NCBI RefSeq assembly: GCF_000150275.1 | Contig: NW_002060943.1 | Span: 13,036,000-13,099,999, forward strand | Direction of reading: 5' to 3' | Source: Trichoplax adhaerens | Taxonomy: Eukaryota > Animalia > Placozoa | DNA: 64,000 bases | Part shown: piece by piece, positions 24,684 through 62,836 of the stretch | Layout of the letters: each line of letters begins with the position of its first letter | Numbering within the stretch: the stretch's first letter is position 1 | Translations under genes and position numbers: made by a program | Notes under the pieces: generated by a model | Told to the model about the DNA's origin: nothing | Seen by the model: the letters and a program-made list of their open reading frames with translations, nothing else | Database searches by the model: none

Positions 24684-28651
<3,968 letters not shown>

Positions 28652-34504: not shown

Positions 34505-35725
34505 CTATGTTAAATCAAGAGTTGTCTGCAGTTTCGAAGCTTGATAAAGAAATGTTCTCGATACTATCACAGTATACATGAGACCAGAAAAATCTGGAGG
34601 CATTTTGTAGGCAGCATCCCCATTCAAAGGCTTTTTTTCGATAAAATTGGAATTCTTTGTTCTGAATTTGGTCTTTATAAATTTCTTCTCCTGCCATTTC
34701 ATTGGGATACTGTTTATGTGTCGCTGCACAAGCTAGAAATATATCAATAGGACCTGATGCGATGAGTTCCTTTTTCCAGTCATGAACTGACGGAAGATTG
34801 TTAAAATCTCTAGCTGTACTCCCTATTAGAACAATGGCTGGGGTTTCCTTTTTTAAGGAAATGAGGGGTACATTCTGATATCTAGTTAAGGTAGCATCAA
34901 AATAAAGAAAAATCTCGTTTTCTATCTGATAATTTCTATCTTGGCTCTTGAGCTGAGCGTGTAAAACTATAGGGATCTTGTATTTAATAGCAGCTTGAAT
35001 GATTACTTTTCAGACCCAAAAGCATGGCAAGCACTTGAGATGGCGATGAATTATTACAAAATCTGCTGAGATTATTTGTTTTACAGTCTGATCCATTTCT
35101 AATTGATATGCCAAACTTTGAATTAGCTCTACTGAATGTACGGACAAACTTTGTCTTAAATGGCTTACAAGCTTATTAGTAAACTTAGATCCTATGTGAC
35201 TAATTTCTCCAATTTTTTTATGTCTGTATACTCGTTCAAAACTAGGGGATTTTCTTTACTTGGTGGCTTGGATATCTTCACTTTTGTAAGCAAGTAAGAT
35301 TGGATTAGAAAATACTCGCTAAAGTTTAAATGAATTTCAATATCACTTTTGAATAAATCGGATATAGATCTTTTATTAACTATCCGATCCAGATTTTCGA
35401 TAAGGTTTAGGCAATGTATTTTGACTCGGCTTATCTCCGATAGAAGAGCTTGGCTATCTACTGGATATCTCAAGAAAATAAGGGCAATCTGAAGAGATCT
35501 AATTTGGCAAGCATTTTCTCCAACAAGTGGATCAAACCTGTTGATATCTTTCTTCGCTACGATTTCTAAAGCTTGTTCTGCAGCGATTATTAGTAGTAGA
35601 TATTCACGGAGACCATTATCCAATTTTTTGGCTTTATTATTATTAGGATCATAAGGGAGTAAATGACTTAAGAGAAAATCTCTTTGATTATTGAAAGGAG
35701 ATCGAAAATTTTTCTCTAATTTCAT
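34505..35725 (-). pseudogene. Full-length pseudogene of the GENACQIR family (copy A)
   Basis: Aligns end-to-end with the intact 423-aa and ~400-aa ORFs but has a 1-nt deletion in an A-run at ~35213-35219, an in-frame TGA at 35010-35012 (CFWV*KV) and a 1-nt insertion near 34550. The corrected C-terminus is NILYQASKLQTTLDLT*. Confidence 0.92.
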
Positions 35726-35727
35726 AT

Positions 35728-35805
35728 CTGTAAAAACGGAATTAAATCGATTGGCTACTAGTGATGTTCGACTAGAGTTTTAACTAAAAAAGGAAATTAA
35801 CTTAC
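35728..35805 (-). other. Putative 78-nt spliceosomal 5'UTR intron immediately upstream of the ATG of copy A
   Basis: Minus strand reads caaca|gtaagtta...ttccgtttttacag|atATG. Confidence 0.55.
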
Positions 35806-38689
35806 TGTTGGATTTGCACGAGTTCGAACATAGTACGGTATTTTCTGGCAATATATATCTATGAATTTCTCCAGAAATTTAGGAGTCTAAGGGATGACAC
35901 ACTGAACGAATGCTGAAATTAATCCTCAACCAGAAAGGATACAATTCGACGCCAATCTAGCTTGTGAAGACTTTCAATACACCTAAGCGAATTGCGCTAA
36001 CCGAACTTTAAACAATAAAATTAATGACAATTTCTTTCTTATACCAATAAAATATCGTATTGCCGATAATTTCAAAGATTAGACTGTCTACAAATATCAA
36101 TTTTCCAAAAAATCGAGAAAATATACGAAGGCGAAAGATTGTTGCCTGTTCAAATCAGGAACTTTTGAAAAAATTCTTAAATGCCTTTCAAGAAAGTAAA
36201 CTGCATTGCATGCACATGCTTAATGCAAGCACAATAAATGCGCCTGCCGAATATACGAAATCCTCTTATTAGCAAACATAGATGATAATGTCATTTCACT
36301 TAGGAGTATGCGAGACAAAAGTATCCAATAGTCGAAACTACTACACTACCCTGCCAAACTACGCCAATATAATGTTAGAGTAAAGCACCGCCTATTAGAA
36401 ACCATTCAAAAATATCAGACCATATGTTAGGGTTAGGGTTAGAGTCATCGCTATATAAAGTAAGTAAGAAGATATAATACAAAAGAATTGAAAGGCTCAA
36501 AGCGGAAGAATTGTAATTACTGTTGAAATTTAAGCTTGTAATGTTGTATAGTTATATCTAATAATATTAGTCTAGAAGCTGTTATTTTGGAGAAATAATA
36601 ACTTAATTGAATGCAACCAATACCAAAGTATAATGCGCGCGAATGGTTAAATGGAGTTGAGTGAGCCAATCTAAAAAATAGGAGGATATTGCACATCATA
36701 TACGTATGTACTTAAAAGTGGAGAATTATATTATTACCAAAACCAGATGGATAGATTGGTGTACAAATTAATCCCCTGGACTCAGAATGATCGCTTACGC
36801 CAACTGTCAACTGTGTCGTATTATCGCATTTATAGCTATGATTGATTGGATTAAGAATGATAATTAAGTAAAATGCTGATTATTTTGTTTACTCACTCGT
36901 ATTTGTCCTTTAGAATAATTTATACCGCCACGTATTAGCATTAGTATCGTCTTATCACAGACACAAAAAAAACTTAGATATTATGATATTATAACAGAAT
37001 AGTAATAAATCTCAAATAGGTATATAAAATATAGGAGCTCGAAAGAGCTCGCAGTTGAGACGTACGTATGTATCAAATTGTTTATTCCTACAATGACCTA
37101 TGTATGATAACTTAACTATAATAGCATACTTGTTGTTTAAAAGATGCTGATAACGTAGTTAATATGTTTATAACGACAGATGGAGTATATAAGTGAGATA
37201 ATGATCAATAAAATTGTTTTGTGTGTGTGTGTTTGAGTTACGGTATACAGAAGTGGTCTTGCGGACTAAACTAACATTAACTATAAGTACTAATTGGTTT
37301 CTTGTATCGTAAGGCTAGTCATGGCACGTCTTTCCAAGCCAGGTATAAAATAGATAGCTTGACCAAAAGAATGCCTATTGTTGCCCATAACAGCGGCGAC
37401 ATTGATTGTTATATACATATCATATTAGTGGCCGCCAATTGCATCTTGACTGCTGATTGCCACAATTAAATTAAAATTATCGCAAAAGTATGCAGCAACT
37501 GTGATAGTGAAAGACAAAATATCTATAGGTATATATTTGAACAGACTTATATGTATTTAAAATATACGTTAAGAAATATTTATCATAAACCGACGAAATT
37601 ATCTCTCGTTATATGCGTAAAGTAATTTGCTTTATTAGCCAAAAGTTAAATCATTATGTAAATGCAAAAATTTTTCTTATAGGCACAAAATATAATATTG
37701 AATGTTAGTTATAATTAATTAAGGTCCATTATAGATTCTAACGAAAATCATGCCAGTGTAATAATTTAATTTAAATTTTCAATGGATATCAGACAAATAG
37801 AAGTACTTTACCTATTGAGAGGGATAGACTTTATAATGGCTTAAAATAATTACTTAATTGTTTCGAAGAGGAAGGAATGCGACTACGTTTATATAATAGA
37901 TTAATAATTATTAATAATTTAGGATGCTACAATACGTAGGATAATAATCAAATGCAAAGAATTCTGGTAAGCTGTAAAGCAATGCCATCCATATTGAAAT
38001 TTTAATTTCCGATTTTGATGTTGGAGAACGAAGACTAATTATATTATCAATGAGGCACGGTACTTAAATGAAATTATCTAAACATCTGTTTAATGTTAGT
38101 CAGTATTTCTTCGTTACTGTTATAATATTCTTGCAAGTAATATATTCATTAATTGATATACAGTATATATGTACTGTCTACATTTATTCACAAATATACT
38201 AAATGAAAATTTTCTAAAGATTAGCAAACTGCTAGACGACAGTCTGATGATCTTGTGTTTATTCCTGCATAATGTAAACTAACATTCCATATTAATTATT
38301 AAATTCATTTTAAACATATAAGGTGAAAATATCCTTTAGCTAGCTTATTTCTAGCTTTGTCCCTAATCTATTTCTAAATTATTAAAAGCTTTGCAATCGT
38401 ATCAATAATCTTATGATACCGAATATAGCAAAGTATTTGAAATTTCTGGTCTCTACAATGGGCATGAATGATGTAGAAAAGTGAATCAGTTCCATACTCA
38501 TGCTCGGATAAGATATTTTTTATTATAGCAATCATCTCTCTTTCGTTGATATTAGCTTTATTCAGAATAAATTTAATATTTCGTTGGTAAGCATACTAAG
38601 CATAAATTCTTTAGCGTAAATATCAATACAGCCGTGATTGAGAAAGCAACACCGCTTGTTCTATTGTAGCAAAATCTATAAATAGTTGA

Positions 38690-39890
38690 TATGTCTCTCT
38701 CGTTATATTCTGCAGTTACGACAATATCGTATGCAAAACTATCAGAACTAATTACTAAAATCCTTTATGCAAATTCAGGAATTTGTAAACTTTCGTTGCA
38801 TGATCTCTGTACGTACTGGTGTAATTATAAGCAAAGAAATATATTTGGTGCTACTAATATAGTGCATGCTGACTGAATGGTATGATCCATCCATCCATCG
38901 TGTACTATCTCACCTTATTCGGCTACATACTAGCGGCTAATTGCAGTTCTTATACATACTGTAGTCAATACCTACTTTTTACCATCCAATTCCTCTGCAA
39001 GTAGTACTATAAATTAGTCTTTAATTTGATTTTTAGTCTTGCTTTCGTTACGTCGTTACAACATGTAGTACAGATCGTTCTCGAGTCTTGAATAAATGTA
39101 AATTTAATATAGTCCTGCTAATATCAACCATGGCAATACTATTTATCGAGATTGACATGATTAGGAAGTTATAATCGTATATTTTAATAGTCTGGCCTTA
39201 TGGTGTAGTATTTTTCTATATAAACGCGATAGACAAAGCCTCATACCAAGCTGAGTCGAGACACTATTATTCACTTATAGGCATTGTTACAGATCTCATT
39301 AGATCTATACTAAAGTCAATAAACCATTCATTAGGTACGCTATCAGATATAATTTGTACTCTAATTATTTTCAGATCGTAAACTAGTAGAAATGCTAGCT
39401 TAGAAAATCACGTATAAGAATACACTAAGCCTAAGTCGCTAAGGTAAGGACAAACTATAACAATTCTTCAAATACAGTATATTCTTGGATGCTGGAAAAT
39501 CGCAGCCATTATATCATGATGATACCAAAACGTTGATCAATTTGCTGGTGGATGTCATCATTATATATTCAACGGTATATTCAGAGCTGGATTGATTCAA
39601 TGTATTCATTGAATTGTAGATAGTCCAATTTATTACTAACATTAAATGATCACTGATCGCAGATTCTCGTTGTATGTAATTGGATGTCTGGAAAGGGATA
39701 TCGTCTCTCGGATAGCCATGCTTTCCAGTATGTATTCTCTAATTAATTCTATATTCAATCTCGGATCTTGCAATCTATCTATCATTTTCCTGTCCTTCAT
39801 CGTAGCGATAGACATACAGTACTGTATATTTAATACATACGGTCTAAATTAAGTAATTAAATAGACACATTTCATATTGGTCCAGTTACG
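38690..39890 (-). pseudogene. Decayed coding-like segment, copy 2 (paralogous to 31590-32700); probably extends left to ~38330 and right to ~40840
   Basis: Colinear similarity over about 1.1 kb. Homologous peptides FAYDIVVTAEYNERDI versus FRSSIAITAKHNKRDM. Multiple stops. Confidence 0.45.
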
Positions 39891-42800
39891 TCTTATAATG
39901 CATTACTCGGGCCAAATTAAATTAGCAACGTCTTAAAAGTAGTCAGTAATCACTGTAATAAGAAAGAGAGTAGATACAATTTAGTTCAAATAGATCAAGC
40001 AAGCACAAGTATTGTAACGTTGTCGTAGAATATGGCCTTAAATAAACTATCTTTGAGACTCTTCTAAATTAAAAGAGTAAGGCTTTGTATGTAAGAATAG
40101 AGAGACTATGCAAAAATCATGGTACTGACATAAAAAAAGACTTGAAGAGTAGATAATAAAGTACTGCTATTTTAGGAAGTTAAATCTTTGAGAGCAAGGA
40201 TATTTTATTGTAGCTTTACTATCTCTTTTTGGTGGTGGTTTAAAATGCTCGGTTAACGGATTGATATTACCTTGGCTTTGCTGAACTCGCTGCAAATTAT
40301 TTTTTTCAATCTTAATTATACATATTAGTAGACGTAATTCAGTTCAATTTAATATTGCAATTAGTAAAAATTATTTGAGCAGTATTACCAAAATAAAATG
40401 GCATCTTGTTTCCACGTAATTATTTCCTTGCCTTAATTTCAAAATGACAGTGCATATATCCATTGCACAAGCCTCACAACTAGCTAGTCGCCTGCACTAA
40501 ATTAATTTGCGAAAATTATGTTGATTCCAGTCTATCTTCAAGGTCGTACTTGATCTATTCTGGACTGTGCAAATAAATCCTTTTTCCTTAAAGATAATCT
40601 CGTAATCCCCATTCTTCAGAGCAGGATCGACCAGACCAGTATTGTCGATATGAATCATCTTATAGTAATGTCTGATTTTGTCTAGAATATCTTGTTCATT
40701 TACGTCTGCTATTATGATTATAATCATCAGTTTAATCGTATTAGAGATATGATCTTTCTTGGAAAGATAGGATAGAATAACTGATGATTGCTGCTCTATT
40801 GGCTGATACATGAAGATCCATACAAAAGTCATAGTCAAGGCGATCAGAAAAAAGATGTATACAAAGTGGTCTGAGAAATGACTTAGACTTAACTAAATAC
40901 AAGGATAGCCATTTTCATTTTCAACATAATGGTAATCGTTACTTTCTAGCTTCCACCCAATTTTATCACGATTTTGATAAGCCATTAGGATAGGAAGATT
41001 GTCGGTATTATTAGTATGGATTACTGAAAATGCCTTTCGAAGATTTAATAGGGGTAATGTAAGTTTAACACTTCTAATTTTGTTACTAACAAAATGATAA
41101 ACATCGGGCTATAATCTAATAATAGGCGTTAATACAGAAAAGTAAGCTGGCAGTGTTAGATAGATTAGCAAAATAAACAGTCAGCTGAACTAAGACGTCG
41201 TCGCATAAACAGATAGACGGTATTTCTAGTTTTAGGCCAGGTATATCGGATAGTTTAATATTATTGTCTTGGTGCCTTTGGCACATCTTAGCTACGGTAG
41301 GATACCTGCTGAATACTAACAGCATAAATAAAAGCTGATTAGATTGCAGTATTCATGCAAAGTAAGATAAAAAAGAAGCATTAAGTACGCTTCAACACTC
41401 TATTAAATCAATGTTTTCTAATTAAATGTATTCTTACCTAAACTCTAACCCGTAATCTGTTAGCGTTGCAATTGCTTATTCTGAGTTATCTCATTAATTT
41501 TGTTTTACTAATAATTTTTTTTCAACAACCAAACGAAAATAATCAGAGAAGAATGCTGTAGCATACATACAGTATGTGATAAATTTTAATTCAAATAATG
41601 GTTGCTAGATTCAGACTTATGATTACGGTACAATCAATGAAAGTTTGCTATTTTTTCCATTTTCTAGTTTTAGATGTAACTTTTGTTTAAGTGCGTAGCC
41701 TATAAATACTATAGTCAATTTATTGATATGTTAGAGTTCGATACTATATGAAACAGTATATTAAAGCCGAGGAAAAAATTGAAATCATCGCCCAGCATAA
41801 CTATGCAATAATCTTAGTAATAAGTCTACCAATATGATCTCTTCGATGGTTACGGTTCTTGATATAAATTTGTTTATCCTGAGTGTGCGAATCGACAACA
41901 TAAATAATTTAAAATCAGCATTGTAAAGCGTATTACAGACGCATGGCTATTCTAAAAGCTGTAGATTAGAGTAATTTATTATCTATACTGATAATGCAAT
42001 TTAGATGTAGACAAACAATCCGTGAAATTCTATACATGTTCTGATACAGGATTTAAGATTCACAGAGTGCAAGGCGAAAGAATTATAATGATTTAGCTTA
42101 CCGGAATTAGTAACGTATAAATTAAAGACATTATTGAGTTTTAGTTTAATTGGTTAAAATCTGACATATCCTGCAACACATTGTCAAGATTAATAGACAA
42201 CTTAATTAGCAATATGGTGCTAACTTTAAAGATTTCATATCTGCCTTACCGCTATATATTTTCATTTCTTTATTAGATCTAAGCTTTCAGCCAAAAATTA
42301 TTAATAGGATGAACAAAACATGTCATTAATTAATATAAAAAGATTTTCACCTACTATATCATATTCAGCCTTTCAGTTCCGATGATAATACCATTCGTTA
42401 TTAGCTTAAAGCTATGAAGAGGTTGTACAATACAGTTTATTAAATTTAGATATACGTATATTAATCATTTTATATTATTTCAAGTGTGCTTTTCAACTTA
42501 TTTGTTACGATATTTCAATCAGTTACGAGTTAAGATACAGTAGTTTCTAAGTTTGTAACGCTATTTCGTTACTATACCTGATCATAAGGCAAATGGGTTA
42601 AGCTTAAAAGCTCCTAGAGGCAGATATTACGTGCACATTGCAATTGTAAATTTCCGTCATTCTTGGTGAATTAATTATTCATTGATTGTAGAGACTTTTT
42701 AGTTATAAGTTATTTCTAATGTCTCTTGTTTGAAGTACTTTCAGTTATTCTACCGATACTGATAGGATACTTTTACAGCCAGGATATTATATACTGTTAA

Positions 42801-43594
42801 AACAAATAGTACAGGTATTATTAAATGGGTTAGTNTATGGCATAGAATTAATTAATCTCTGTCACAAATATCTTCTTTTGTGAGCGATTAAACTTCTCTA
42901 ATTGCTATTACTCTCGGTGTAAGCTGGCTATTACTGTCGAGGATAGAACTACTAGAAGAGTCTTAATGTTATAATATACTTTATTGGTATAAATCTGGGT
43001 TGCAGGCCTGTCTATTACGATCGAAATTAATGGTTATTTATGTTCATTTATTTGTGTATAGAATTCTACTTACATCATAACTATTACAATACGTTATGAG
43101 TAATGATGTCTCTATCCCAACACTATCTTCATCTGATACTTATAGATAGGTTTATTGTTAGATATACATATAGAAACAATTTGTTAAGCAGTTTGCTATC
43201 ATTTTAATCCTTTTTCTGCCTTAAGAAAGTTAATAATTAAGTAATTCTTAACGCCGAGAATGATTCACGTTCATTTTATTTCTAATCAAAAGTAATATTG
43301 TGATTTTATCGTTAAAAATCAAATAAAAGGCTATTGCAAATATCAAAAATGCTTTGATTTGGTACCTCATCTACTATCAACGAAATAATACAATAATAAT
43401 GTCTCGTAAATAAAAGTTTTCCATACAAAATAAAATTTTCCTTTACGATATCGATAAAATGATGATACAAATCAGATAATGTGTAAGTAACAAAGGACCA
43501 AATATAAGGTGAAATTGGTCATATTAAAGGATTAAAATCTTCATAATATTACTGTACTCCATTTTAGAACTGTCGTGGAAGTTTGGTATAGTTT

Positions 43595-44708
43595 ATTGAG
43601 CATATATAAATTTTACAATAGTAGATATAAGCAGTCTTCTATTCTCAGAAGTAGACCTACTGTTAGATTTATACATGAATTTAATTTATTGATGATGGTA
43701 AATACTTATCCTTCGAGATACGGCATTTGATTAATTTTAAGTGTTAAGAAATTATCTAAGCGAGTGCATCGTAAATTATCAATCTTAAATTTTGATTATA
43801 ATTTTAGCTACGAAGACATCGATTATTTGCGTTCGTCTGTATTATCATTAGTCTTTACGTTTAAGTGAGAGATTTGAAGACTCTTTATGACTGAAGGCTA
43901 GCAGGATCCTGACCTCACAGGGTTAACTTCGGCTAATTTAGTTATTCTCAAATAAATCTTGATTATAGCAATAAAGGCGTGTTATAAATTATAGTACTAC
44001 TAAAATAAAAGAAGCTGGGAAGGAAACACCGCCTCTTCATCATATTTATTTATTAAAAAAACAAAATTTTACTTTCATAATTGAATCTAACAAAATTAAT
44101 TTCAGTATTAGTTCGACATCTTATTTTGTACATTATTTATACACTATTTAAGAGCTAACAATAGCTTCTACTTTCATAAAGTTGAAACGAACAAATAACA
44201 TAGCGATAGCAACTATTAATATGAATGAATTGTTCTTTCATTATTATGGTTTGAAAATAGCAGTGAATGTATTCTGATCGTGTTTGCTATGAATAAATCC
44301 CTATAGAAATATCAAAATGCGTTATACGGCTATGTTGTGCAACGGAAGTGAAAGTTGAGCTAGCAATTGTATTCTCTGCCATAGTATTTTTGAGATGCTA
44401 ACATAACTATCAAAGTTATCTCGTATAACGTGAATGGCCTGGATTGTGAAGATAAATTAAGGTCGCCAAGCATGATTAGTTCTATTGTTGCATAGGAGTA
44501 TGAATCTTTCAAATTCTTGATAATTTAAAATACCCGTATAGGCATAGGAAATGCTATGCTCCAGATAAACATTTAATCAGTTGTTAATAAGATTATAGTG
44601 ATCGCAGCATGAAAACTATGTTATAGTCTAGGTATACGATACCTTCGCTACATACCTAGACCATAACAACTGTTCGCATACCTCACCCGTTAGTTCAGTC
44701 ATCATATA
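43595..44708. repeat. 1114-bp segment essentially identical to 62887-64000
   Basis: Same sequence at a constant offset of 19292 at both ends. The only difference I noticed is an N at 63842. Confidence 0.95.
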
Positions 44709-45519
44709 GATCGCCCTCGTCATCACGATCAGCATACCTATACCGCAATAACTATATCGTGATTATATAGATTAGTAAGCTTTGTCGTCGTAATTTTTCA
44801 CAAAACTGTATAAAAGTAATGCCTTGCTGTATGTATATCATTAGAATAGAATTCTGTATGCATCTTTATATTGAAGAATTTAATACTTCTGCATCTGCGA
44901 CTTGGCCTTTATTCATACGGTCATGATTCATCCTCCATTAATCTGACGAAAAATTCTAGTAAAAAAATTTACAGAGATACTAACACTATTTATTTATACA
45001 AGTTACATTTAAACAATGTCAAGACTTAATTCACAGCTACCAATGTAAACGGAATATGTAAATAGGATTTCGCCGTTTTTATTCTTCAAGTTGTTTGAAT
45101 AAGATATATTTCCTTTATAAGCTACTTTTAGTGAGGCGTAAGTGAATAAATGTACTACAACTAGTATAAAAATAGGTTGACTAACGCTAGCAGTAGTCTG
45201 ACTTAATATTAATCGATTTTGACGGCTTATCACTTTGAATTACTTATAAATAAATATAACATCAGCCTGAATTTAGTCTTGTGGAACCTACATTTGATTA
45301 TGCTATTAGTAGATTTAATTTCAATTTAAATCCAATCTCTGATAGGACTTCTACCCATCAAAATATCGTTGTCGCAATATAGCAAAATTGAAAGTTCAGT
45401 ACCATTAAAAGTACTAAATCAACAATTCTTTATCCATAGCCTGACATACTTTATCATTTTAGCGATATTTCTAAAGGAATTGCTAACTGTTTTATCATAT
45501 TTTTCAATAATAAATTGTA

Positions 45520-45650
45520 GTTTCTTCAGCATTGCGTGTGGAAAATAGGTAGCTTGATCCGATAAATTTCGATGCAATATTTTTAATAGCAAATCCTAGT
45601 TTTTGCAGCGTTGCGTGAAGAAAATAAGTAGCTTAATCCGATAATTTTCG
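45520..45650. repeat. Two-copy ~73-bp diverged tandem duplication
   Basis: cagc.ttgcgtg..gaaaata.gtagctt.atccgataa.tttcg occurs twice. Confidence 0.7.
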
Positions 45651-47110
45651 TATAATCTCCAGTTTCTATATTTAATCTAGAGAGCAAGTTTAGAGGACAT
45701 ACACGTATAGGCAAAGTAAAGAGCAAAAGTATAGGACGCCAAGTATCACGAGCCAGGGCTCAACTAGTATTTAATAGCTATACACTGTACAGCGTACGTA
45801 TACACTTCTGTAGGCGATATTGAGGACGGAGCATGAAGGCTGGAAATTTGCACGACTCTCTTTCGATAATCTATTAAAACCCAACTATGTTATAGTTTAT
45901 TCTTAATAATTATTCTATATCGAGATTGATTCATGATGCAAAGATAGTGACTACAAATACGTTGTGAGGTTATTCAATCTGCTAAAATCTGCACTAACTA
46001 ATATATGAAATTTACGGTATTTAATCCGACTAATTAATACACTACAGAGCTTGTGTGCAACATACTGTCGTATATCGTATTTTTATCGTGTTTAGTTAAC
46101 TTATTCTATTTCTGTTGTAAGTAGTTGATCTCAAGAATTAAGCCGCATTATACCTTAATATATTATACTGTGATATGATTATAAAATAATATCGGTCAAT
46201 GACTACTTACATTAATAGTCTTTACGAGACTTGATGAACTCAATACTACGATACTGTATACTGTATGGCGGTAGTGAAATCATATGCATCCCATATATAC
46301 TGCATATTGGTTGCTGTCATGTTCTGTTTTGCGGTGATAATAATTATTAGTTTGATAGTTTTAATCGAATAAATGTTTTGATCGACCTTCGAGCAATTAT
46401 TGTACTCATTACGTCGCTAGGCTACAATTTGTGATACAGTCGTTAGTAGATCATAGCTACGGCATGGCTAGGATACTGGTTGAATCGACCGTATATGTAC
46501 CAGTGATTATTGACTAATAATAGAAATTTGCTTTTATATTTTATTCTGAAATCTAAAAATGAGCAAAATTTACTTCTTAATATTCGCAAAATATTCCCAA
46601 TGGAGCGGTGCTCACTACGTCGTATACTTGTAAATATACAGTGGTTTAAAGTTGTTAGTTGATAATGGATTCACTTTGAATTCAAGGCGAGACTCAGATA
46701 GAACTTCTCTCTATTAAAATATATTTCATTTATACTTATTTATTTTCTTTCAAATATCAATCAATTTATACAATATATTTATGAAACAACAACAAAGTGG
46801 AGTAATGAAAAGTGATTTACTGCTCAAAGCTCTTAGCTCAAAAAACCTACATTAGCTAAGAATTTAGTAGACGATGCAGATTAAATAAACAAATTAAGGC
46901 ACATTGCATAGTAGAATGGAGTACACGATAACGTATTATTCTGACATCCACTTCATACCTGCAGTATGCTACTACATCTCTTCATTAAAATAGGACATTT
47001 AATAAAGGCACGTTATGACTTATAGAATGGTCATTTACTACCGTATAATCGGCAACGAAAAATGAGATAGTCCAACGATGAATTTTTATGATAATCGACA
47101 ATGGCTGTTG

Positions 47111-47407
47111 CTACTTTAAATGAAGTAGTTGCTCTAATTTCGAGCTTTTTTATAGCATATTCTCGGTATGATCACAGTAGATATGCAATAAAAAAACGGG
47201 AAGAATTTTGCAATCAGCAACCCCATTCCAAAGCTTTCTTTCGATAAAATTTAAACTCTTTGTACTGAATGTTAATTTCAGATATTTCATCAGGATATTG
47301 CGTATGTGCCGCTGCATAAGCTAACAGTAAATCAACTGGGCCTGAAGTGGTTATTTTCTTTATCCAGTCGCTTATGGACAAAAGATTGCTAAAATTTCTG
47401 CATGTAT
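47111..47407 (-). pseudogene. C-terminal fragment of the GENACQIR family (copy B), sister of copy D
   Basis: Encodes ...SDWIKKITTSGPVDLLLAYAAAHTQYPDEISEINIQYKEFKFYRKKALEWGC... with in-frame stops. Its 3' flank matches the 3' flank of 57841-59034. Confidence 0.9.
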
Positions 47408-48953: not shown

Positions 48954-50225
48954 ATGCCAGTAAGTGATTGTGTAGTACACATGATTTCAAACGAAATCAT
49001 GTATGAAAAGTATCCCCCATCTCTTTCAAACTGTCATAGAGATTTCCTCCTAAGTCAACTACTTCCGTACGATCCCAATGTTAAGAAAAATAAAAGATTG
49101 ATAGATGGTCTGAAAGAATATCTACTACTTACAGTTGCTGCGGAACAAGTTTTAGAACTTTCACGGAAGAATGACATTAACAAATTTGATCCACTTGTGG
49201 GAGAAAACGCCTGTCAAATTAGAGCTGTCGAGACCGCTCTTATCTTCTTCAAGCCCTCACAAGAAAACAGTACCGCTATTTTACCCAAGATACGTCAAAT
49301 TAAATTGAAATGTCAAAATCTGATTAAAGATGTCGGTCAACTAGCTAAAGAAGGATATTCTTTAGCCGATTTGTTACAAAGAGACAATATCGAAATCAAG
49401 TTAAACTTCGACGAAATTTATCTAATCCAATCTTATCTCCTTACAAAGGTGAAAATGCCTAGACCGCCAAAGGAAGAATATCCTCTCATCAAGAACGAGT
49501 ATACAGATACGAAAAAAATTAAAGAAATTAGCAGTGTGGGATCTATGTTTGCCGACAGATTAGTAAGCCATTTAAGAAAAAGTCTATCTGAGCTTTCAGT
49601 CCAGTTTGTTCAGGAGTTAACATATCAAATAGACTTGGATCAGAATATAAAGCGAATGATCTCGACAGACTATGTAGCAATGCATCGCAACCTTACATGC
49701 TTACCCTGCTTTTGGGTGATGAAAGTAATCATGAAAGCTGCGCTATTTTATAAGATTCCTATAGTTATGCACGTTCAGCTAAAGAGTAAAGATAGAAATT
49801 ATCAACTAGAGCACGAGATCTTCCTCTACTTCGAAGCTACTTCATTTGGATATAAGAGAGTATCCCCAACTTGCTCAAGAAAAGAGTCTCCAGCTATAAT
49901 TCTGCTAGGTAGTACATGCAGAGATTTTAATAAACTTCCATCAGTAAATGAGTGGATAGAAGAAATAGCTACATCAGGCCCTTTTGATTTACTGTTAGCT
50001 TATGCGGCAGCGCACAGACAGTATCCTAATGAAACATCGGAAAGAAAAATACGTCAAATGAATTTACAAGACGAAGAGTTTGAATTATATCAACACAACG
50101 CTTTTGAATATGGATGTAGCATGCAAAACTCCTCTAGATTTTTTTTATCGCATGCTTATTGCGATCGTATTGAGAATATTCTCCATCATACTCCGAAATT
50201 ACAACTAGAACTTGACTCAAAATAG
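48954..50225 (+). CDS. Intact intronless hypothetical protein, GENACQIR family (copy C, 423 aa; the start may instead be the Met at 48999)
   Basis: 1272-nt uninterrupted ORF in very AT-rich DNA, with strong full-length similarity to the other copies in the window. Confidence 0.9.
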   Translation: MPVSDCVVHMISNEIMYEKYPPSLSNCHRDFLLSQLLPYDPNVKKNKRLIDGLKEYLLLTVAAEQVLELSRKNDINKFDPLVGENACQIRAVETALIFFKPSQENSTAILPKIRQIKLKCQNLIKDVGQLAKEGYSLADLLQRDNIEIKLNFDEIYLIQSYLLTKVKMPRPPKEEYPLIKNEYTDTKKIKEISSVGSMFADRLVSHLRKSLSELSVQFVQELTYQIDLDQNIKRMISTDYVAMHRNLTCLPCFWVMKVIMKAALFYKIPIVMHVQLKSKDRNYQLEHEIFLYFEATSFGYKRVSPTCSRKESPAIILLGSTCRDFNKLPSVNEWIEEIATSGPFDLLLAYAAAHRQYPNETSERKIRQMNLQDEEFELYQHNAFEYGCSMQNSSRFFLSHAYCDRIENILHHTPKLQLELDSK

Positions 50226-53200: not shown

Positions 53201-55242
53201 ATGGCATCTGTAATGTAACTTAGTATTGTGATTGTAGACTGTTAGCCATGTGTAGTATAATGTACGGTAGATATTTATCCTAAGAGATAATTGGTAGCTA
53301 TAACTATAGACTGTAGTGGTTTAGACTCTATGCTAGAGTACAGATGACTATATACAGTAAGGTGTTGAGTTACTAATGAGGCTATAGGTAAAAATAGAAC
53401 TGTAAATCATATATTAGGATATGGTTAATTCATTGTACTTTGGCTGGTGTGAATAATGTCTACGTAAGTACTGTAGTCGTATCCATATTGGATTAATGAT
53501 GATCTGCAGTAGAATAGTCTTTCTAAGAGTAATTTAACTATGTGTAATATTAGGTAAAAGGTTGCCATGCGGATTGTAGCTGCGAATGCTACGAAAAGTA
53601 CAAAAGCATGCAACTTTAGATTATTCAGTTAGTTCTTTCTAGAAGTCTTTAGTAGTAGTATTCGGCTAGAGTGGAGCTATGTGTAGTTAATCTTTGTATA
53701 AGATTCAATAAAGCCATTATTTTTCTAAAATTTGGAATCTCGTGATTGGTATATATCACATTTGGCGCTGCGAGTACATCAAAGTAGTAATAATCATAGT
53801 TTACCAGGCAATAATATTCTATCACTTAACACATGCGTGGCATACAGAGATTTACGCTCCGAAAGTCAGCAGTATATATGTACATTAAATTAAAATTACA
53901 GTGATAACTCTGTTTATTGTAGATACTCTATAGTACTGATACTTGATTGATAATCTTATACAATACATTTAGTTAGTTTCTAACATATTTTTCTTTTAGA
54001 TGTCTCAATTTCTAATTATGCAGCATGTACTATTCTGAGAAAAACTTGACAATTTTTCCTTTTTTCCCATATTAATGATTCCTAGAAGGCGCGATGCACA
54101 CCGCATCCATGCCGAAATATGCATGCTAAGCAATAAAGGTAAAATTTCTCTTGACATCACGTTCATTAACCTAAGACAAGAAACAACTTTGTAAACATTT
54201 TTTATCAGTATATTTTAATCACAGATTAGCAAAATGATTCGTATAACGTATGTAGAGGTTACTGAAAAATTAATAGATTGTGATATGAAAAATAATTCAC
54301 TTAAATATCTTAGTAAAGCTGTAATGTCATTAGCTATTATGGGCGCTATGCAGATAGCATTGGCTGTATATTAGGCTATGCAATCTTTTAATATAAAGGA
54401 AATGGCAATTCTTAGCTGTTTGTCTTGATAAGATGTTTAGGTAAAGGGGAAGTGTCTTGTGATTTATATACTACCGCGTAGTACAACTTGAAACTAATAA
54501 TTAGAAAGCGCCTAAAGTTGCAGTAATCGTTCGTTCTATTTGAAAAATTACGATTAAATTGATTGTTACGGGGATAGTCTACTAGTTGCAATACTTCATG
54601 TATTTTCGATCTGATTTACGCAAATACTATAAAGAGCATAAATCTAGGATATCCCTGCCCTGCACACACATGTCATGTAGTAAGCATTCTTGCTAAATAT
54701 ATCGCATCTTTTATATTTATGTTTACGGGTTGTTAAAAATTGAGGTTTACAAGGAGAAAAATATACTAAAAGATCATATACTTGTATGTCTTAATGGCCG
54801 ATTTATTTGTATTCCATTCATGATACAAATAGTTTATTTATCCAGCTCGTTTCTTGACCGTCCAAAAAGCTGATAGCGAGGAATACAATTCTACTTTGGA
54901 TAACTACGATGTTTATTTTTGTACTACTTGTGATTAACGTCGGAAAAGACTAACAATTTGAGGTAGCCATAAAATTAGAAAGTGATGTCCAAATAAATTA
55001 GTCGCTGTACATTTATTGTACGTACTTGATTCTTTTTTTACCTTCATGAACGTTTAAAAAATATCTAGGAAGCATATACAGTAAGATAATATAGTTGTGA
55101 ATTTTCTTATAATGTCATGCTTCATATGCAATACGTTCTAATTCATTTGAACGGGTATTTAGCTAGTAATAGTACCGTAATAATTAATTAAAGGTATATG
55201 ACACAGTTTTGAATTACTTGCAAACACTGCACTTCAAACTAT

Positions 55243-55279
55243 TCTATTATTATTGTTATTATTATTATTATTATTATTA
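55243..55279. repeat. (ATT)n microsatellite
   Basis: Direct reading of the sequence. Confidence 0.85.
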
Positions 55280-57840
55280 AAGCATATCCAATCTTCTAGT
55301 TCACTTCAACGACACAATAGCAAGTAGAATTGGCCGTTGAGATATTATTAATTTTTTAGATATCGTTACTATTTTTATGATATAATTTTTAGTTGATTTT
55401 AAATTATTAATAAGTTGCACTTCCGTCCAAACTTTCACCATATTATTTACCGATATTTAGATCGAATAGTTTTAATTCAGTTGAATGTATGTAAGTATTT
55501 TCTGCCTATCAATACTCGGAGATAAATATTGTAATCTATATTTAATTGTGCCTATCTTGAAATAATCCTAGTCCTAGTAAAATAAATTGATATCATTCTA
55601 ATTGATGCCGAGTATTGATATCAGTGGCTATTGAATAATCATTCGTCGATGCCTCAATTTTTTTTAATTAAGAAGCTTTATTGTATTATAGTAAAGAGTG
55701 TTTACTGGATCTTAAATTCTAGACTAAATTTTCTTTTCGATATTGCTACCTTTACACACGAAAAAATAAAGGATAATGTTCTATAACGGTTTACAAACAA
55801 TATTTTAATCGTATTCATATGAAAGTTTGTGATCAATGATATTGCAGAGAACTTGTGTGGAATGGCAATCTAGACTATAATACCAATAGTTTAAGTTTAC
55901 AAGCTGAAATACTCGTTTTGGGGCATATGAATCATGGACGAATAACGAACGTATTAATCCGTTCACTGCTGCATACTGCGCTCACGCTGCAAATTAATTC
56001 AAGTAGATTATTCTTAGAGCAGTATTGTATGATATTGTCCATCAAGTGCAAAGAATTCGTTATATAATAATAAGATTGAATGTATAAAATAGACTATTGG
56101 CAGTAGGGAAGGTAATTTATGCGGACGATACCAAGCAAGAAATGTATTAAAAGGAAGTTCAATTGATTGACGATGCTGTGATAATCTGATTCTAGTAAAT
56201 CTTATTTAAATTCAAGATTAGCAAAATACACGAATTTTGTTCCGATTCTATCATATAATTGTGTTCAATAAAAGATTTTGCTTTATACTACAAATTAGGA
56301 TACCATCCAAATTTAATCGAAACTGCTAAACTGCAGGATGAACCTCATACCGATAAGTCAGACTAATTATAATCATGGGCGCGTTTGCTCTTGATATTTA
56401 TGGAGAAACATACGTACCGGTAAGCTGCACAGTAGATTTTAAGCAAGATATAAGAATGAATAACGTCATGGTAAATGATCTTCTTCTTGAAGATACGGCA
56501 AATCTTAAGAAAGCTGTAATTATCGTCGACCAAGCTTCAGCAATGAATTTTAACATGTTTCGAGTGAAATTTTGTCACAAACTGCAATACGGTCTCATAT
56601 GGAAGTAAGCTAAATCTAAGACAATTCAATCGATAAAATAAACTATTCCAGTTTAAGTTTTTCTTGAAGCAAATTCAATTTCGTAATGACAGACTTACTA
56701 AAAAAAAAATGCATTAAACTAGCAACGTGCTCTCACTGAGTACGGCATTCTACTCCAATTTGGTGCTGGGATGCACTACTGGATGCTCTCGTTGATATAA
56801 TATTTAGTGGTCCACGGTGCTAGTAGCTGTTCGGTGTCCGTGCCATTTCATTGCTTTCTTCAGCCTCAAACCATTAATTTACTTATAGAGATTGCCATGA
56901 ATTCTTCATTTACATTTACTTTCTTTCAAATACTGTGCTAATTAATTTGTACAATATATTTATGAAACAAACAACAAAGTGGAATAAAGAAAAAGTGGTT
57001 GCTCAAAACTCTAAGCATAAATAACTGACTGTGATGGAGGGTTCGAAGAGTCTGCGGATGTAGACTCCTCAGGCATTTCACAATAATGATACGAGGGCTT
57101 ATTAGAAAAAGAGATATTTATTGTAGAGAATAACTAAGTACAGTGTGGTAGCTAGTCGTAGATCAGTGCATAAGCTGTTATGAAGTAACGTGTGTAGAAT
57201 ACTAACACTAACAAGTGTAACTGCATTAATCTGAGGCAGAAATCATCAGTATTTAAGTTTTAGAGAGAGAACATATGCAGAGAAGAGGATTATAGAATTA
57301 GATACATCATATACCATAAACAGGCTATATAATAGTAAATGATTGTAGGAAATAGCAAAGACTGTAGGTGCTATAAATACCTAAACATGGCAAGCTATAT
57401 TTGAGCATAGTTGAAATAGACTATAGAACTAAATACCCTACATACTACGATACAAATATTTAACCTATACCACGAAGAGGTATGTATATTCAGAACATAA
57501 CAAAATATCTGTATTTAAGAACATATCTAAAAAACTACAGTGAAAACTAAATACACTACACTGATATTAGCTAAAAATTTCGTAGACAATATAGATTCAA
57601 TACGCAAGTCAATGCACAAGGCATGGTGGAAAAAAGTAAACGATAATATATAATTCTAAAATCCACCATATACCTGCAGTATGTACTACATTTTTTCATT
57701 AAAATAGGACATTTAATAAAGGCACGCTATGACTTACAGAATGGTCATACTACTGTATAATCGGCAATAAAAATATGAGGTAGTCTAACGATGAACTTTG
57801 TGATAGTCGACAAAGGCTCTTGTTACTTAGAATGAAGTTG

Positions 57841-59034
57841 TTATTCTAATTTCGAGCTTTCCTGCAGTATATTTTCAATATGATTACAGTATGCATGCGA
57901 TAAAAAAAAGCGCGAAGAATTTTGTATACAACAACCCCATTCTGAAGCTTTCTTTCGATAAAATTCAAACTCTTTGTCCTGAATATTGATTTCAGATGTT
58001 TCATCAGGATATTGCCTATGTGCTGCTGCATAAGCTAACAGTAAATCAACTGGGCCTGACGTGGTTATTTCCTTTGTCCAGTCGCTTATGGACGGAAGAT
58101 TGCTAAAATCTCTGCATGTACTACCTAGCAGAACAATTGCTGGAGATTCTTTTTGTAAGGAAGAAGGACAAACATTCTGATATTTTGACGAAGTCGCTTC
58201 AAAGTAGAGATAGATCTCATGTTCCAGCTGATAATTTCTATCTTTGCTCTTTAACTGAACGTGCATAACGATAGGAATACCAAAAGACAGCGCCGCTTCC
58301 GTGATTACTTTTGCCGTCCAAAAGCACGGTATGCACTTGAGCTTGCGATGCATTACTACAAAGTCTGCCGAGATCATTTGTTTTATACTCTCTTCCAATT
58401 CTAATTGATAGGCTAACTCCTGAACAAATTGCACTGAGTGTTCTGATAGATTCTGTCTTAATCGAGCTACTAGTTTATTAGCAAACGTAGATCCTACACT
58501 GCTAATTTCTTTGATTTTTTTGGTATCAGTATACTCGTTTTTGACGATGGGATTTTCTTGTCTTGGAGGCAAGACTATTTTCACCTTTGTAAGCAGGTAA
58601 GATTCAATTAGGAAAATTTCATCAAAGTTTAAGTTGAGTTCAATATTCTTTTCTTTTAGCAAATTGGATAAAGAAAATCCTTCTTTAATCACTCGCTCAA
58701 TATCTTGCAGCATGCTTAAGCATTGCAATTTAATTCGATTTATCTTGGATGAAAGGACTTGGTTATTCACTAACGGATGCTTAAGGAAGACAAGAGCAGT
58801 CTGAATTGCTCTAATTTGGCAAGCATTTTCTCCCACAAGCGGATCAAACTTATTGATATCATACTTACTCAGCATTTCCATAACATGTTCTGTAGCTATT
58901 ACAAGTACTAGATATTCTTTGAGGCCATTGATTAATCTCCTTTCTTTCTTAACATTAGGATCATAAGGAAGTAGTTGACTTAGATGGAAATCCCTTTGGC
59001 AATTGCAAAGGGATGGAGGAAGTTTCTTCAACAT
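57841..59034 (-). CDS. Intact intronless hypothetical protein, GENACQIR family (copy D, 397 aa from the ATG at 59034; the ORF track begins at a GTG at 59055)
   Basis: Uninterrupted ORF, roughly two-thirds identical by eye to copy C. The ATG of MLKKLPPSL aligns with MYEKYPPSL of copy C. Confidence 0.9.
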   Translation of the reverse strand: MLKKLPPSLCNCQRDFHLSQLLPYDPNVKKERRLINGLKEYLVLVIATEHVMEMLSKYDINKFDPLVGENACQIRAIQTALVFLKHPLVNNQVLSSKINRIKLQCLSMLQDIERVIKEGFSLSNLLKEKNIELNLNFDEIFLIESYLLTKVKIVLPPRQENPIVKNEYTDTKKIKEISSVGSTFANKLVARLRQNLSEHSVQFVQELAYQLELEESIKQMISADFVVMHRKLKCIPCFWTAKVITEAALSFGIPIVMHVQLKSKDRNYQLEHEIYLYFEATSSKYQNVCPSSLQKESPAIVLLGSTCRDFSNLPSISDWTKEITTSGPVDLLLAYAAAHRQYPDETSEINIQDKEFEFYRKKASEWGCCIQNSSRFFLSHAYCNHIENILQESSKLE

Positions 59035-62000
59035 ATTTTCTTTTCGAAATGTCACTACCTAGACGAGTGCTAGTAATTTCTTGACTCGAGAGCTGGCTCT
59101 ATCCAAAGAATGATCATTCATTTAATAAAAGTAGTATGTGAACTTTTCCGCATGGGCAACTAATCACTTCTTCCAAAAAAAGTTGACGAGTTCAAAATGC
59201 AACACATTCAGTAAGCAGATGCTCAAAATTAATCAAATATATCAGCTCTATAGTAAAGGAGGAACGCCCACAATCTTTCTTGATATTGTAGATGTACCGG
59301 CAATATGGAATCCAATTTAGTACAATGTTCAAATGAAACCTTGACGAATGGGAGCTAAATAATAAAGCAGAAACATTAGCAATCTTCTTACGTATGTGGA
59401 CGTACGGTCAATGCAGAATACGCTATAGTAGAATGGAGCAAGAAATTACGATGAATTGGGAACGATTTTAAACAGAAAACAAGTGGCTCTAACGTCATCT
59501 AACTTGCGAAAACTTTTAGTGAATATTGACGAATGGATCAGGGCTTCACACTATCAACTTGATGTAGTGATGCACTTTGATAGAACCTTCCATAAAATGA
59601 TCGAGTAATACTGTAGACATTGCATAGCTACGTAATAGCTATATATTTACAATACTTACTTTCATGATCGTACGACATCAATCAAAAAAAATCATTGAAA
59701 CTGGTAAAAAATATTGACAAAGCTCAAATATTCGTACATGTATATATATAAAGCAAATATCATTCCATCAGTCATTTCTNTGCATGACGCTACAGATTAT
59801 CAAATTGTCAGGCAGTCTAATATTTACTTTTGTATAATATAAATTTCAATTTTTGTCTTGTTACTATTAAATGATACCTTTCATTATTTTACTCGTAGAA
59901 ATAATGTAATAACTCTTCATAAAATTGATAATGAATTATCGATGACAAAACTACTTCCATATCCAGTTATCATAAACAAAATATCTTTACGCCCAATCAT
60001 AGCAACAATTAGCAATATATAATAATTCAAACTAACATTAATGAACTTACCAAAAGAATCATTTTTGCTTTTGCATATAAACTAGAATTAAAGTTAACCG
60101 TTCAATCGGCACCGGCATTATGGTTCATGGTAAGATTAGTGTCAAATCCATCTTATCCAAACTGAATTAATTCATGCTCATGATAGGCGTCTTCATCATT
60201 ATTTCGATAGAATAATTAGTATGCCTACATCGTGCATGGAATGTATGCTCATATAATTGTTAATATTATTGCAGGGAAATCGGTTCTACGCATACAGTGC
60301 GACCTTGACCATCCTTTGAGCTAAGATGGCGGTGCCAAACCTGAGTGGACTAGTGTTGTCAAAGAATTACGGTATCGTCAATCTTAATTCCTAAGACAAG
60401 TTATCATGAACTATGTGGAGTACTAGCACATAATAGGTATAATGATAAGATCCAATGCAATTACCTAGTTCTATTTATATTCAAGGTTCTGTAACCGTAC
60501 TAGCTAAAAGTGCAGCCGTTGTTAATGTCAACAGACTGGTTGATTATTACGCAGTTTACGTTTTTGTCTTCCATTATAACGTCCACAAAATCCCAGTCTA
60601 GATATGTTGTAATTCACAAACTACACGAGACATGTTTAATGGGTGCTCTAGTACGTTTGGATAAAATTGCCTTTACACATTAGTAAAGTCTTGACCTTAT
60701 AATGTCGGATAGAATCTGTTTCAGCTTGCTCGTGCCCATACTATATCTAGTAAAGACCTCTTTCTAAATTTTACCCTATAACGCGAAAGCGAAGGGGTTC
60801 TAATGATTGTCGGTTCTACTACAGCATGGGATTAGGCGTTCCCTATAACTCAGACAGGCATAGTGTAATAAATGGACTCCCTTTAGCCCCTAGTCTAACG
60901 CATCATCAAGTAATTAGTCTCACAATGTAGTAGTTCAAATAATTTATTACTTAAATATATTATTGAACATTACATTAGTAAAATTTGAGACCACAAAACT
61001 ACAAACAGCTAGCTCGCAAGCTATCGACTGATTTTCTCTCGAAGGAGCCAGCCTTTTATGTTTTTCTTACAGCATGTTGACACACATATTTACCAAATCA
61101 TTTTCACTAGTCCATTCAACTTGGTTGTAGTATGGCTCCTACTGGTACAAGGCCCCTGACGAGGTATGATTGCCGATTCGAAATCTCTCACTCTTAGCTA
61201 ACCGTATCCAAGTTACTGAGATTTATCGATTCCGTCCGGGACAACTTAAGAAAAAAAAGCTATTCTATTACCTCACAAATAAAGACCGGGACGTATTTCT
61301 TACCAATAGATAAACAATTTAAATTGTTTGTCTCGGTATTTTTTATAATATTTACTCTAACCAACTACAAACACAATCGCCAACAAGTGTCAATATTTGC
61401 AGGCGTAGAAATGAAGAATAACTTCTAGCTAGGACAAGATCTTTCTAGTTCCGACTCGCTATAAAGGAAGTTACGATATGGATATAGCAAAAAGTAAAAT
61501 AAATCTTTAATGTTGACTAGAATAATTGTTAATTAATAGAATAGTGTAAATTGTACTTGAAAAACGGTTAATGGAAATATGGTTAAATTGTCAATTGTTA
61601 GGAATTGTTTTAATAAAAGAAACTGGTTAAAAATTATGGTATAGATGGAAATTTAGAGTAATATAATTTAAAATGATTGTTTTCGTACATTAGGCAGAGA
61701 GAGAGTATAGCTAGTTGTTAATTGCCGAATTGAATAGTGAGTAAAATAAAATTAAGAGGATTGACTCTCATATAAATCTATGTTAGATTATCTTATAGAA
61801 ACTATATAATTTATATGTGTTTTGAATATCACTTATGTATGGGCTAATCTTGCTAAAGGTATATAAGAGCTTCACGACTAACTATCAGAAAAGAGAATTA
61901 GATGAAGCTGTAGTAAGAGTATTATTAATAAAGGCTGTTTACCTAATGCAAAACAGTTCTTAAGTATTTAGCTGACTAAGGTAGTTTCACTAGGTTGTAG

Positions 62001-62516
62001 TGACTAAAGACGTTTAGGAGAAATAAGCTTAGGACTAGTAATAATTTTAAACTTGTTGCAATCGTAGTTGTAACAAGTGGTAAATCAAATCAACTTACTT
62101 AGTTACTACATCTTCTTTAATGTCTTTGATAGCCGTTTATTTTAATCATACTTAGGATTGATCTGAACAAGTAAAAACTACTTATTTGCGAATACTAAGT
62201 TGAATTCATCGTATGTTACATTTAGTTCAGACAAGTATTTTATAATAATCGATTTTATAACTGATTATCTAACGATTGAGATACTACATAATGCAATAGA
62301 CCAATAAGCTTTAACAGACTAGGAAAGCTTCTCACAACAGCAGATCTTTAATAAAAAGGATTAAAAACAAGAACAGATGAAAGTAGCTACTTAATTACAC
62401 TATTTAACTTGTTTACAACCTAAAAGAATTGCAAATAAGTTCACTTAAAATTAGCAAAAGTTAGTACGAGAGCAAAACTGAATAAGTAGTAATAAAATTC
62501 TGAGAAGCTGAAATCA

Positions 62517-62836
62517 TTATATTTCTGCAAGTTTTTTAGGATCTGTATGCTCGTTCACGACTAGCGGATTTTCTTTCTTAGGTGCTTTGCATACCTTCAC
62601 TTTTGTAAGCAAGTAAGATTGGATCAGAAAAAGCTCGCTAAAGTTTAAATGAATTTCTATATCGCTTTTAAATAAATTAGATAAAGATCTTGTTTGAGCA
62701 ATCCGATCAATATTTTAGATTAGGTTAAGGCAATTTATTTTGATTTGACGTATCTCCAAAAGAAGGGCATGACTATCTACTGAATATTTCATGAAGATAA
62801 TAGCAATTTGAAGAGATCTAATTTGGCAAGCATTTT
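62517..62836 (-). pseudogene. Internal fragment of the GENACQIR family (copy E), most like copy A; its 5' part is lost in the gap
   Basis: NACQIRSLQIAIIFMKYSVDSHALLLEIRQIKINCLNLI*NIDRIAQTRSLSNLFKSDIEIHLNFSELFLIQSYLLTKVKV...NEHTDPKKLAEI*. In-frame TAA at 62715-62717, and homology ends abruptly at ~62520. Confidence 0.9.

Follow-up and report, generated by a model that had tools for sequence, protein, structure and literature searches.

A bacterial gene family of putative cysteine amidohydrolases in the genome of the placozoan Trichoplax adhaerens

Introduction

To our knowledge, well-supported transfers of genes from bacteria to animals that are kept by selection are still few, and transfers from Chlamydiae are known mainly in plants and algae, not in animals. 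In the placozoan Trichoplax adhaerens, Driscoll et al. [quoted passage not shown] The placozoan symbionts known today are one rickettsial and one margulisbacterial species (PMC6784892). Here we analyse a stretch of 64,000 nucleotides of the T. adhaerens genome (the window; assembly GCA_000150275.1, scaffold DS985241.1, 13.26 Mb) which carries a cluster of intronless genes and gene remnants of a single family, named F1 here. Like the candidates of Driscoll et al. 2013, one of which is chlamydial, the F1 copies are bacterial genes on a large eukaryotic scaffold of the same assembly. Unlike them, F1 was not among the 12, has no annotated function and is multi-copy with pseudogenes and fragments, and it can be traced to bacterial sister contigs and bears the signature of purifying selection.

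Two further described systems are close enough to be compared with F1. With the OTU/otubain proteins (PF02338, PF10275) it shares the order of its candidate residues, an Asp and an Asn in a loop, a helix-capping Cys and a His on the C-terminal strand, and like the bacterial OTU effectors SnOTU of Simkania and wMelOTU of Wolbachia it occurs in intracellular bacteria. Unlike OTU and otubain proteins, it matches none of their sequence profiles, its structural matches to them are insignificant, it is larger with a long helical N-terminal half, and its bacterial genes sit in a permease/hydantoinase operon where the effectors stand alone. The second system is the hyu-type operon, which combines an NCS1 permease (Mhp1, CodB), a hydantoinase and a downstream amidohydrolase. 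Bacterial F1 loci are similar in that they join an NCS1-type permease (F2 below), a hydantoinase-A-family gene, a DUF917 gene and a soluble enzyme in co-directional, tightly packed order; they are unlike hyu operons in that F1 is not homologous to known carbamoylases, racemases, deaminases or hydantoinases (Pfam, NCBIfam and Foldseek searches), and in that the F1/F2 pair has in many Chlamydiae been amplified into arrays without hydantoinase genes.

We give a probability of roughly 75% to the reading that a single transfer of chlamydial type, followed by local amplification, gave placozoans a family which selection has kept and whose products are cysteine amidohydrolases or acyl-transferases acting on an imported compound.

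Placozoan F1 genes nest within the chlamydial radiation

Two trees were computed, one of 107 rows and a careful IQ-TREE analysis of 46 rows, with support given as ultrafast bootstrap (UFBoot)/SH-like approximate likelihood ratio test (SH-aLRT) values. In the 46-row tree the placozoan sequences formed one clade (100/99), in agreement with the 107-row tree, the bacterial locus L069 was sister to this clade (100/98), the bacterial locus L068 was next to branch off (100/100), and all three were nested within the chlamydial radiation. This nesting of the animal genes in a bacterial tree points to one bacterium-to-animal transfer, followed by local duplication. No eukaryote besides Trichoplax was among the named matches in the databases searched, where most metagenome matches are unnamed; within this scope, the nested phylogeny and the absence from other eukaryotes both argue for horizontal acquisition.

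The closest sequence, 65% identical to the intact animal copy C, came from a Logan assembly of SRR14234111 (P0003), the next closest (P0005, 58% identity) was found on contig SDBT01004304.1, and the contigs that carry them are bacterial, with closely spaced genes. SDBT01, the source of L068, is a metagenome of deep-sea sediment from Loki's Castle (PMC7449678). Several genes on the closest contigs which do not belong to the family also match labelled chlamydial loci.

An earlier reading, made from the letters of the window without database searches (the sequence-only reading), had proposed that the family encodes a lineage-specific soluble enzyme and was gained by horizontal transfer, for example from a bacterium living inside cells, with local amplification afterwards, or else arose by retroposition. 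The first proposal holds, as the named relatives outside placozoans are all bacterial and the placozoan clade is nested among them; the second is rejected because neither an intron-bearing parent gene nor a eukaryotic homologue outside Trichoplax was found. The homology searches and the phylogeny of the hits further show that F1 is not a family of wide distribution in metazoans and not an open reading frame (ORF) of a transposon or virus.

Five F1 copies in the window

Searches with tblastn, using copies C and D as queries, and with a family profile in all six frames found exactly five F1-derived segments in the window, bearing out the two intact genes, one pseudogene (A) and two fragments (B and E) recognised in the sequence-only reading; the blocks that it had listed as shared correspond to the invariant and near-invariant columns of the family. 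Copies A, B and E were read piecewise or with an X at each break.

Both intact genes are intronless. Copy C (48954-50225, + strand) is an ORF of 423 amino acids (aa) with its annotated start at ATG 48999 (408 aa), and its orthologue in Trichoplax sp. H2 is TrispH2_009043. Copy D (57841-59055, - strand; TRIADDRAFT_52830) has a longest ORF of 404 aa from GTG 59055, or 397 aa from the annotated ATG 59034, and its H2 orthologue is TrispH2_011449. C and D share 66% identity over 404 aa. The maximum 19-residue hydropathy of the two proteins is 1.65 and 1.49, and no signal peptide or transmembrane helix is evident in either, in line with what had been claimed from the letters.

Copy A (34515-35725, - strand) is a full-length young pseudogene with tblastn matches in two frames. 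Compared with the H2 coding sequence it carries a one-base deletion causing a frameshift at ~35219/35220 and an in-frame stop at ~35010, and besides these only nine substitutions separate it from the intact H2 orthologue TrispH2_009042 (403 aa); as the two are 99% identical, A died very recently. Copy B (47132-47405, - strand) is a frameshifted C-terminal fragment with a stop, covering approximately residues 321-417, which arose as a partial DNA duplicate of the 3' half and 3' flank of D (46851-47406 corresponds to 57566-58120 at 84% identity). Copy E (62520-62834, - strand) is an internal fragment of the A lineage with one stop, covering approximately residues 85-192 and sharing 83% identity at the DNA level with the H2 orthologue of A. 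Upstream it runs into a 50-N scaffold gap (62837-62886), so that E may owe some of its missing length to an artefact of assembly. Except in B, which carries the flank of D, the similarity between paralogues stops at the boundaries of the coding sequence. Within the placozoan clade the copies fall into three lineages, A/E, C and D/B. Additional members lie on small unplaced scaffolds, and each Trichoplax genome has ~8 models of the family, annotated "hypothetical protein".

Paralogue pairs gave ratios of non-synonymous to synonymous substitution rates (dN/dS) of 0.19-0.28, well below 1, at a dS of 0.9-1.1. D differs from its H2 orthologue by 6 synonymous and 4 non-synonymous changes, and the intact copies retain 27 of the 27 positions conserved across the family. 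At least two copies in T. adhaerens (C and D) and three in Trichoplax sp. H2 are intact and, judged by these substitution patterns, under purifying selection.

The course of events that we propose is as follows: a Chlamydia-like intracellular bacterium of the Planctomycetes-Verrucomicrobia-Chlamydiae (PVC) group, probably marine, would have passed a single gene to the placozoan germ line, where it would have duplicated locally into the lineages A/E, C and D/B, with tandem duplication and birth-and-death evolution proceeding under purifying selection. The animal retained the enzyme alone, without permease or hydantoinase partners, and presumably uses it in its own cytosol.

The bacterial family and its operon

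An indexed search returned 148 relatives of the animal proteins and an exhaustive HMMER search returned 680 representative clusters, 146 of them below 1e-30, which belong mostly to Chlamydiota and other intracellular bacteria, including Legionellales and Amoebophilus. Among GTDB species representatives, 62 loci were identified; combined with loci fetched via individual proteins, and with duplicates removed, this made a set of 64 non-redundant bacterial loci. Almost half of these (31/64) are from Chlamydiota (Parachlamydiales, Rhabdochlamydiaceae, Simkaniaceae and Anoxychlamydiales), nine are from metagenome-assembled genomes (MAGs) labelled "Verrucomicrobiota", six from Pseudomonadota including Legionellales and 15 are unlabelled, the remaining three being single loci from Amoebophilus (Bacteroidota) and from MAGs labelled Acidobacteriota and Nanobdellota.

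The family also has longer forms. Eight bacterial members of 822-975 aa (P0167, P0187, P0199, P0223, P0233, P0234, P0235 and P0240) carry a soluble C-terminal extension of ~430-570 aa with conserved motifs such as NP.KFLLDH..YW and repeat-like helical segments, in which no known domain was found and only insignificant alpha-solenoid matches were obtained. We considered whether these 820-975-aa proteins are Rosetta-stone fusions of F1 to the permease F2 and rejected this, as the extension has neither a match to F2 nor transmembrane segments. In P0121 and P0122, two F1 units are fused in tandem.

In bacteria, F1 is typically accompanied by a fixed set of partners. F2 is a polytopic NCS1-type permease resembling those for purines, cytosine and hydantoin: it has a weak full-length match to CytX, PF02133 is found in few of its members, and some sources name it a cytosine/purine permease. 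It is not a distant paralogue of F1, a possibility rejected by hhalign (probability 0.13%). The other two partners, a DUF917/S-Me-THD-like gene and a hydantoinase/oxoprolinase-A-like gene, pass Pfam thresholds. F2 is found within 10 kb of F1 at 46 of the 64 loci, DUF917 together with hydantoinase A at 19, and at least one partner at 51. The genes lie on one strand with ends abutting or overlapping and with F1 first, in the order F1-F2-DUF917-hydantoinase at 13 loci and F1-DUF917-hydantoinase at five. This linkage to an NCS1 permease and a hydantoinase-family gene is a property of the bacterial homologues, the animal locus being without partners. In the subclade nearest to the animal genes, F1 and F2 have multiplied in alternating arrays (F2-F1'-F2-F1-F2). 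Judged by its gene content, the F1 operon is a predicted uptake-and-processing pathway for N-heterocycles or amides, with no signature of an effector or of defence.

The sequence-only reading had likened the amplification to that of defence or toxin genes, and here it found no backing: F1 had no match in PADLOC or PHROGs, no transposase or viral Pfam family was matched, and the bacterial context is the metabolic permease/hydantoinase operon.

Several other features of the bacterial loci were observed. In a Chlamydiae MAG (locus L056), a single 759-aa ORF (5963-8242, + strand) fuses an NCS1-like permease (residues ~5-325) to a DUF917/S-Me-THD-like domain (residues ~439-750), and on these domain matches it is a Rosetta-stone link from transporter to enzyme. 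At 23 of 66 bacterial loci, in chlamydial arrays, the sequence directly preceding F1 genes encodes a conserved membrane peptide of 56-63 aa with a glycine-zipper motif (C..AGGIVG.V.GGP...AGVF.G), for example at 6544-6717 (+) in L002 and at 3670-3840 (+) and 7781-7972 (+) in L004. These peptides had at first called to mind a bacteriocin or RiPP-like cluster; their matches are weak and limited to DUF456 and glycine-zipper families. The array in L002, from the Parachlamydiales MAG 'Ca. Acheromyda pituitae', adjoins a small polyketide synthase (KS-PP-TE), an adenylation-carrier protein and an MFS transporter (10571-16432), and an Rce1-like CPBP protease flanks the array on its other side, as it does in L004. 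In L068 a resolvase, a Tn3-family transposase and an NB-ARC STAND NTPase lie beside the F1/F2 array (567-4290 and 1-459), neighbours which suggest that the part of the bacterial genome holding this array is mobile or variable.

Predicted fold and candidate active site

No Pfam match was obtained for C, D, A, 118 family members or 15 long fusion proteins, nor for C, D and the 118 members at E<=1; there was no F1 match in NCBIfam, and none among PDB sequences in single-protein or profile searches, the family profile finding no OTU. Confident AlphaFold2 models were obtained of C (predicted local distance difference test score, pLDDT, 91.9; predicted template-modelling score, pTM, 0.90) and of a compact 304-aa bacterial member (pLDDT 94.9, pTM 0.92), two proteins which are ~25% identical. 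In the model of C the N-terminal ~22-30 residues are disordered. As judged from these predicted models, F1 has a fold without a solved relative.

Four residues, D79, C87, R90 and H354, are invariant in 118 sequences. When all clades are taken together, including the divergent F1', the fixed residues are only D79, N85, C87, H400 and G387; in F1', H354 is replaced by Tyr in seven of eight members and R90 varies. In the model of C, a helix (87-99) begins at C87 and a C-terminal strand (397-405) contains H400, and the compact model agrees. This predicted arrangement of Cys helix and His strand matches the OTU layout, with catalytic roles that are putative and based on conservation and the model. 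The conserved residues and the models thus suggest a papain/OTU-like layout of a Cys-His-Asp triad, in which a candidate nucleophile-position Cys87 stands at the N-terminus of a helix after Asp79 and Asn85, and His400 on the C-terminal strand; by their pattern of conservation, His354 and Arg90 are likely substrate-specificity residues. F1 is most likely a putative cysteine-dependent amidohydrolase or acyl-transferase, whose substrate would be an N-heterocycle or amide that the cell imports, or the product formed when the ring of such a compound is opened.

The rival function that fares best is that of a secreted, host-targeting effector, an OTU-like deubiquitinase or ubiquitin-like protease, which the placozoan would use as an extra deubiquitinase, perhaps against intracellular bacteria. 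Among the weak top Foldseek matches of the two divergent models, no class recurs more often than otubain and OTU structures (OTUB1, OTUB2, a rice OTUB-like protein, Simkania SnOTU, a Wolbachia OTU and the OTU of Crimean-Congo haemorrhagic fever virus, CCHFV), a class that turns up with both models, and the Cys-loop motif D-x5-N-x-C-x-x-R-A, with the Cys at a helix N-terminus and the His on the C-terminal strand, fits the OTU layout. The family is moreover confined to host-associated bacteria (Chlamydiota, Legionellales, Amoebophilus), occurs in multi-copy arrays, has long extra C-terminal domains in some members and a disordered N-terminus of ~22-30 residues. Against this, the OTU/otubain matches are insignificant (E 0.14-0.9, probability <=0.15, template-modelling (TM) score <=0.2), none of 118 members matches Pfam OTU or Peptidase_C65 even weakly, and the bacterial genes share a fixed operon with a permease and enzymes of hydantoinase type, to which they are translationally coupled, an arrangement typical of metabolism rather than of effectors. 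We treat the structural resemblance to OTU/otubain as a lead from the models that confers no membership, and an effector role as unlikely.

Somewhat less probable again is a metalloenzyme in which Asp79, Cys87, His354 and His400 bind zinc or iron and which deaminates or hydrolyses a nucleobase-like NCS1 substrate. A conserved Asp/Cys/His/His set is a classic one for mononuclear metal ligands and the partner permease is similar to permeases for cytosine and purines, next to which metal-dependent deaminases or amidohydrolases often occur; however, His354 has become Tyr in seven of eight F1' members while Cys87, His400 and Asp79 persist, and F1 shows no likeness to known deaminase or amidohydrolase folds.

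Several points weigh against the reading of F1 as a chlamydial-type gene whose product is a cysteine amidohydrolase or acyl-transferase. Metal binding by D79, C87, H354 and H400 is the main alternative to their catalytic assignment and could be their actual role, and that assignment is drawn entirely from conservation and predicted secondary structure. Foldseek found no significant neighbour for the two models against PDB or in BFVD (best E 0.07-0.33, TM <=0.2). The operon inference is strongest for the distant members of the family, because the array-type loci near the animal genes often lack the hydantoinase pair. The two loci branching closest to the animal genes, L068 and L069, are on contigs without a taxonomic label and would be chlamydial by their position in the tree and their shared neighbour genes. 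Finally, placozoans are sampled by only two closely related genomes, T. adhaerens and Trichoplax sp. H2.

Genomic integration and alternative origins

Two contigs of the H2 assembly align collinearly, with 96-99% identity, to positions 25.4-45.8 kb and 50.9-62.5 kb of the window and carry the F1 orthologues. This assembly was sequenced independently and bridges the 50-N gap (30105-30154) between copy A and a host Rab gene, so that the F1 copies are contiguous with bona fide host genes and the arrangement is reproduced in a second assembly, both of which argue for horizontal acquisition by the animal. The Rab-type small GTPase (24834-27519, - strand) lies ~7 kb from A and is split by introns, with its G1-G5 motifs (including TSAK) in four separate reading-frame segments, and the syntenic H2 gene model has Ras/Arf Pfam matches. 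Exons of the flanking genes were inspected one by one. No remnant of the permease, the glycine-zipper peptide or other genes of the donor locus was found in the window.

The opposite direction of movement, from an old eukaryotic or placozoan gene into bacteria, or vertical inheritance with loss everywhere else, is strongly disfavoured. In its favour, the identity of the placozoan copies to their nearest bacterial sequence (65%) matches that between the copies themselves (66%), yet the family spans 680 bacterial representative clusters and several chlamydial families with deep divergence and a conserved operon context, the placozoan clade is a shallow tip, three nodes deep at 98-100% support, and no other eukaryote is among the named matches. 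Bacterial contamination or an assembly chimera, which the symbiont sequence known to be present in the T. adhaerens assembly (PMC3641634) and the 50-N scaffold gaps at 30105-30154 and 62837-62886 might suggest, is effectively refuted by copies scattered over 28 kb of AT-rich non-coding DNA on a 13-Mb scaffold, by their decayed copies and fragments, by the window having no other bacterial gene, permease or peptide remnant, and by the independent H2 assembly, which shares the arrangement and bridges the gap to Rab.

Other features of the window

Intronlessness had been taken in the sequence-only reading as setting the family apart from intron-split host genes. This is right for the Rab gene, but the trait is not unique to F1: an intronless 433-aa ORF at 14129-15430 (- strand) encodes a homologue of the synaptic vesicle membrane protein VAT-1 of the zinc-type dehydrogenase (MDR) family, whose best named matches are from amphioxus, fishes, echinoderms and corals, together with another Trichoplax paralogue. 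This animal gene with one exon, which may be a retrocopy, was rejected as a second foreign gene, an alcohol dehydrogenase-like candidate, on these metazoan best matches. Because it too has a single exon, intronlessness alone does not mark a foreign gene here; the phylogeny does. Base composition was uninformative as a marker of foreign origin, as the animal copies, their bacterial relatives and the host all have ~34-38% guanine plus cytosine.

Inspection of reading frames also identified a WD40 motif at 6157-6192 (+ strand). An uninterrupted 333-aa ORF at 11880-12881 (+ strand), rich in Ser, Leu, Lys and Ile and without a Pfam or PDB match, could be an orphan gene of placozoans or an ORF that exists by chance. 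A 1.1-kb direct repeat (43595-44708 and 62887-64000, 99.9% identity), one copy of which lies just past the gap beside E, may reflect duplication in the recent past, a mobile element or assembly redundancy. Another pair of repeats, of older date, occupies 31762-32716 and 38922-39907 (81% identity).

Discussion

The identifiers of the F1 genes and proteins are not mentioned in the literature searched, and in a 2026 compendium of metazoan transfers Trichoplax occurs in the text only within a reference. F1 is a further bacterium-to-animal transfer; what it adds is an uncharacterised family, a fold without a solved relative and a newly described operon. The case is a clean one: the family has one origin in the animal, its bacterial sister group is marine and can be identified, two assemblies confirm its integration, and it evolves by birth and death, with copies that are intact, decaying or reduced to fragments.

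A bolder reading, which we hold only tentatively and think rather less likely to be right than wrong, is that F1 is a structurally new Cys-His-Asp hydrolase which completes an undescribed chlamydial pathway for scavenging heterocycles and which placozoans have domesticated for a new cytosolic activity. If this were true, F1 would be only remotely related to OTU and papain enzymes, if at all, the pathway would be widespread in environmental Chlamydiae, and domestication would have followed an earlier association with chlamydiae of which the placozoan microbiome no longer shows a trace; the animal F1 might then serve to detoxify or exploit a metabolite from bacteria or from the diet, or to control intracellular bacteria.

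For the bacteria, the analysis brings to light a large family (680 representative clusters) without a Pfam model or a solved structural relative, and its operon offers a concrete route to the functions of F1, of DUF917 and of a divergent branch of NCS1 permeases in Chlamydiae. For the animal, F1 points to a past chlamydial association of placozoans, consistent with the chlamydial-type rsmE of T. adhaerens (PMC3641634).

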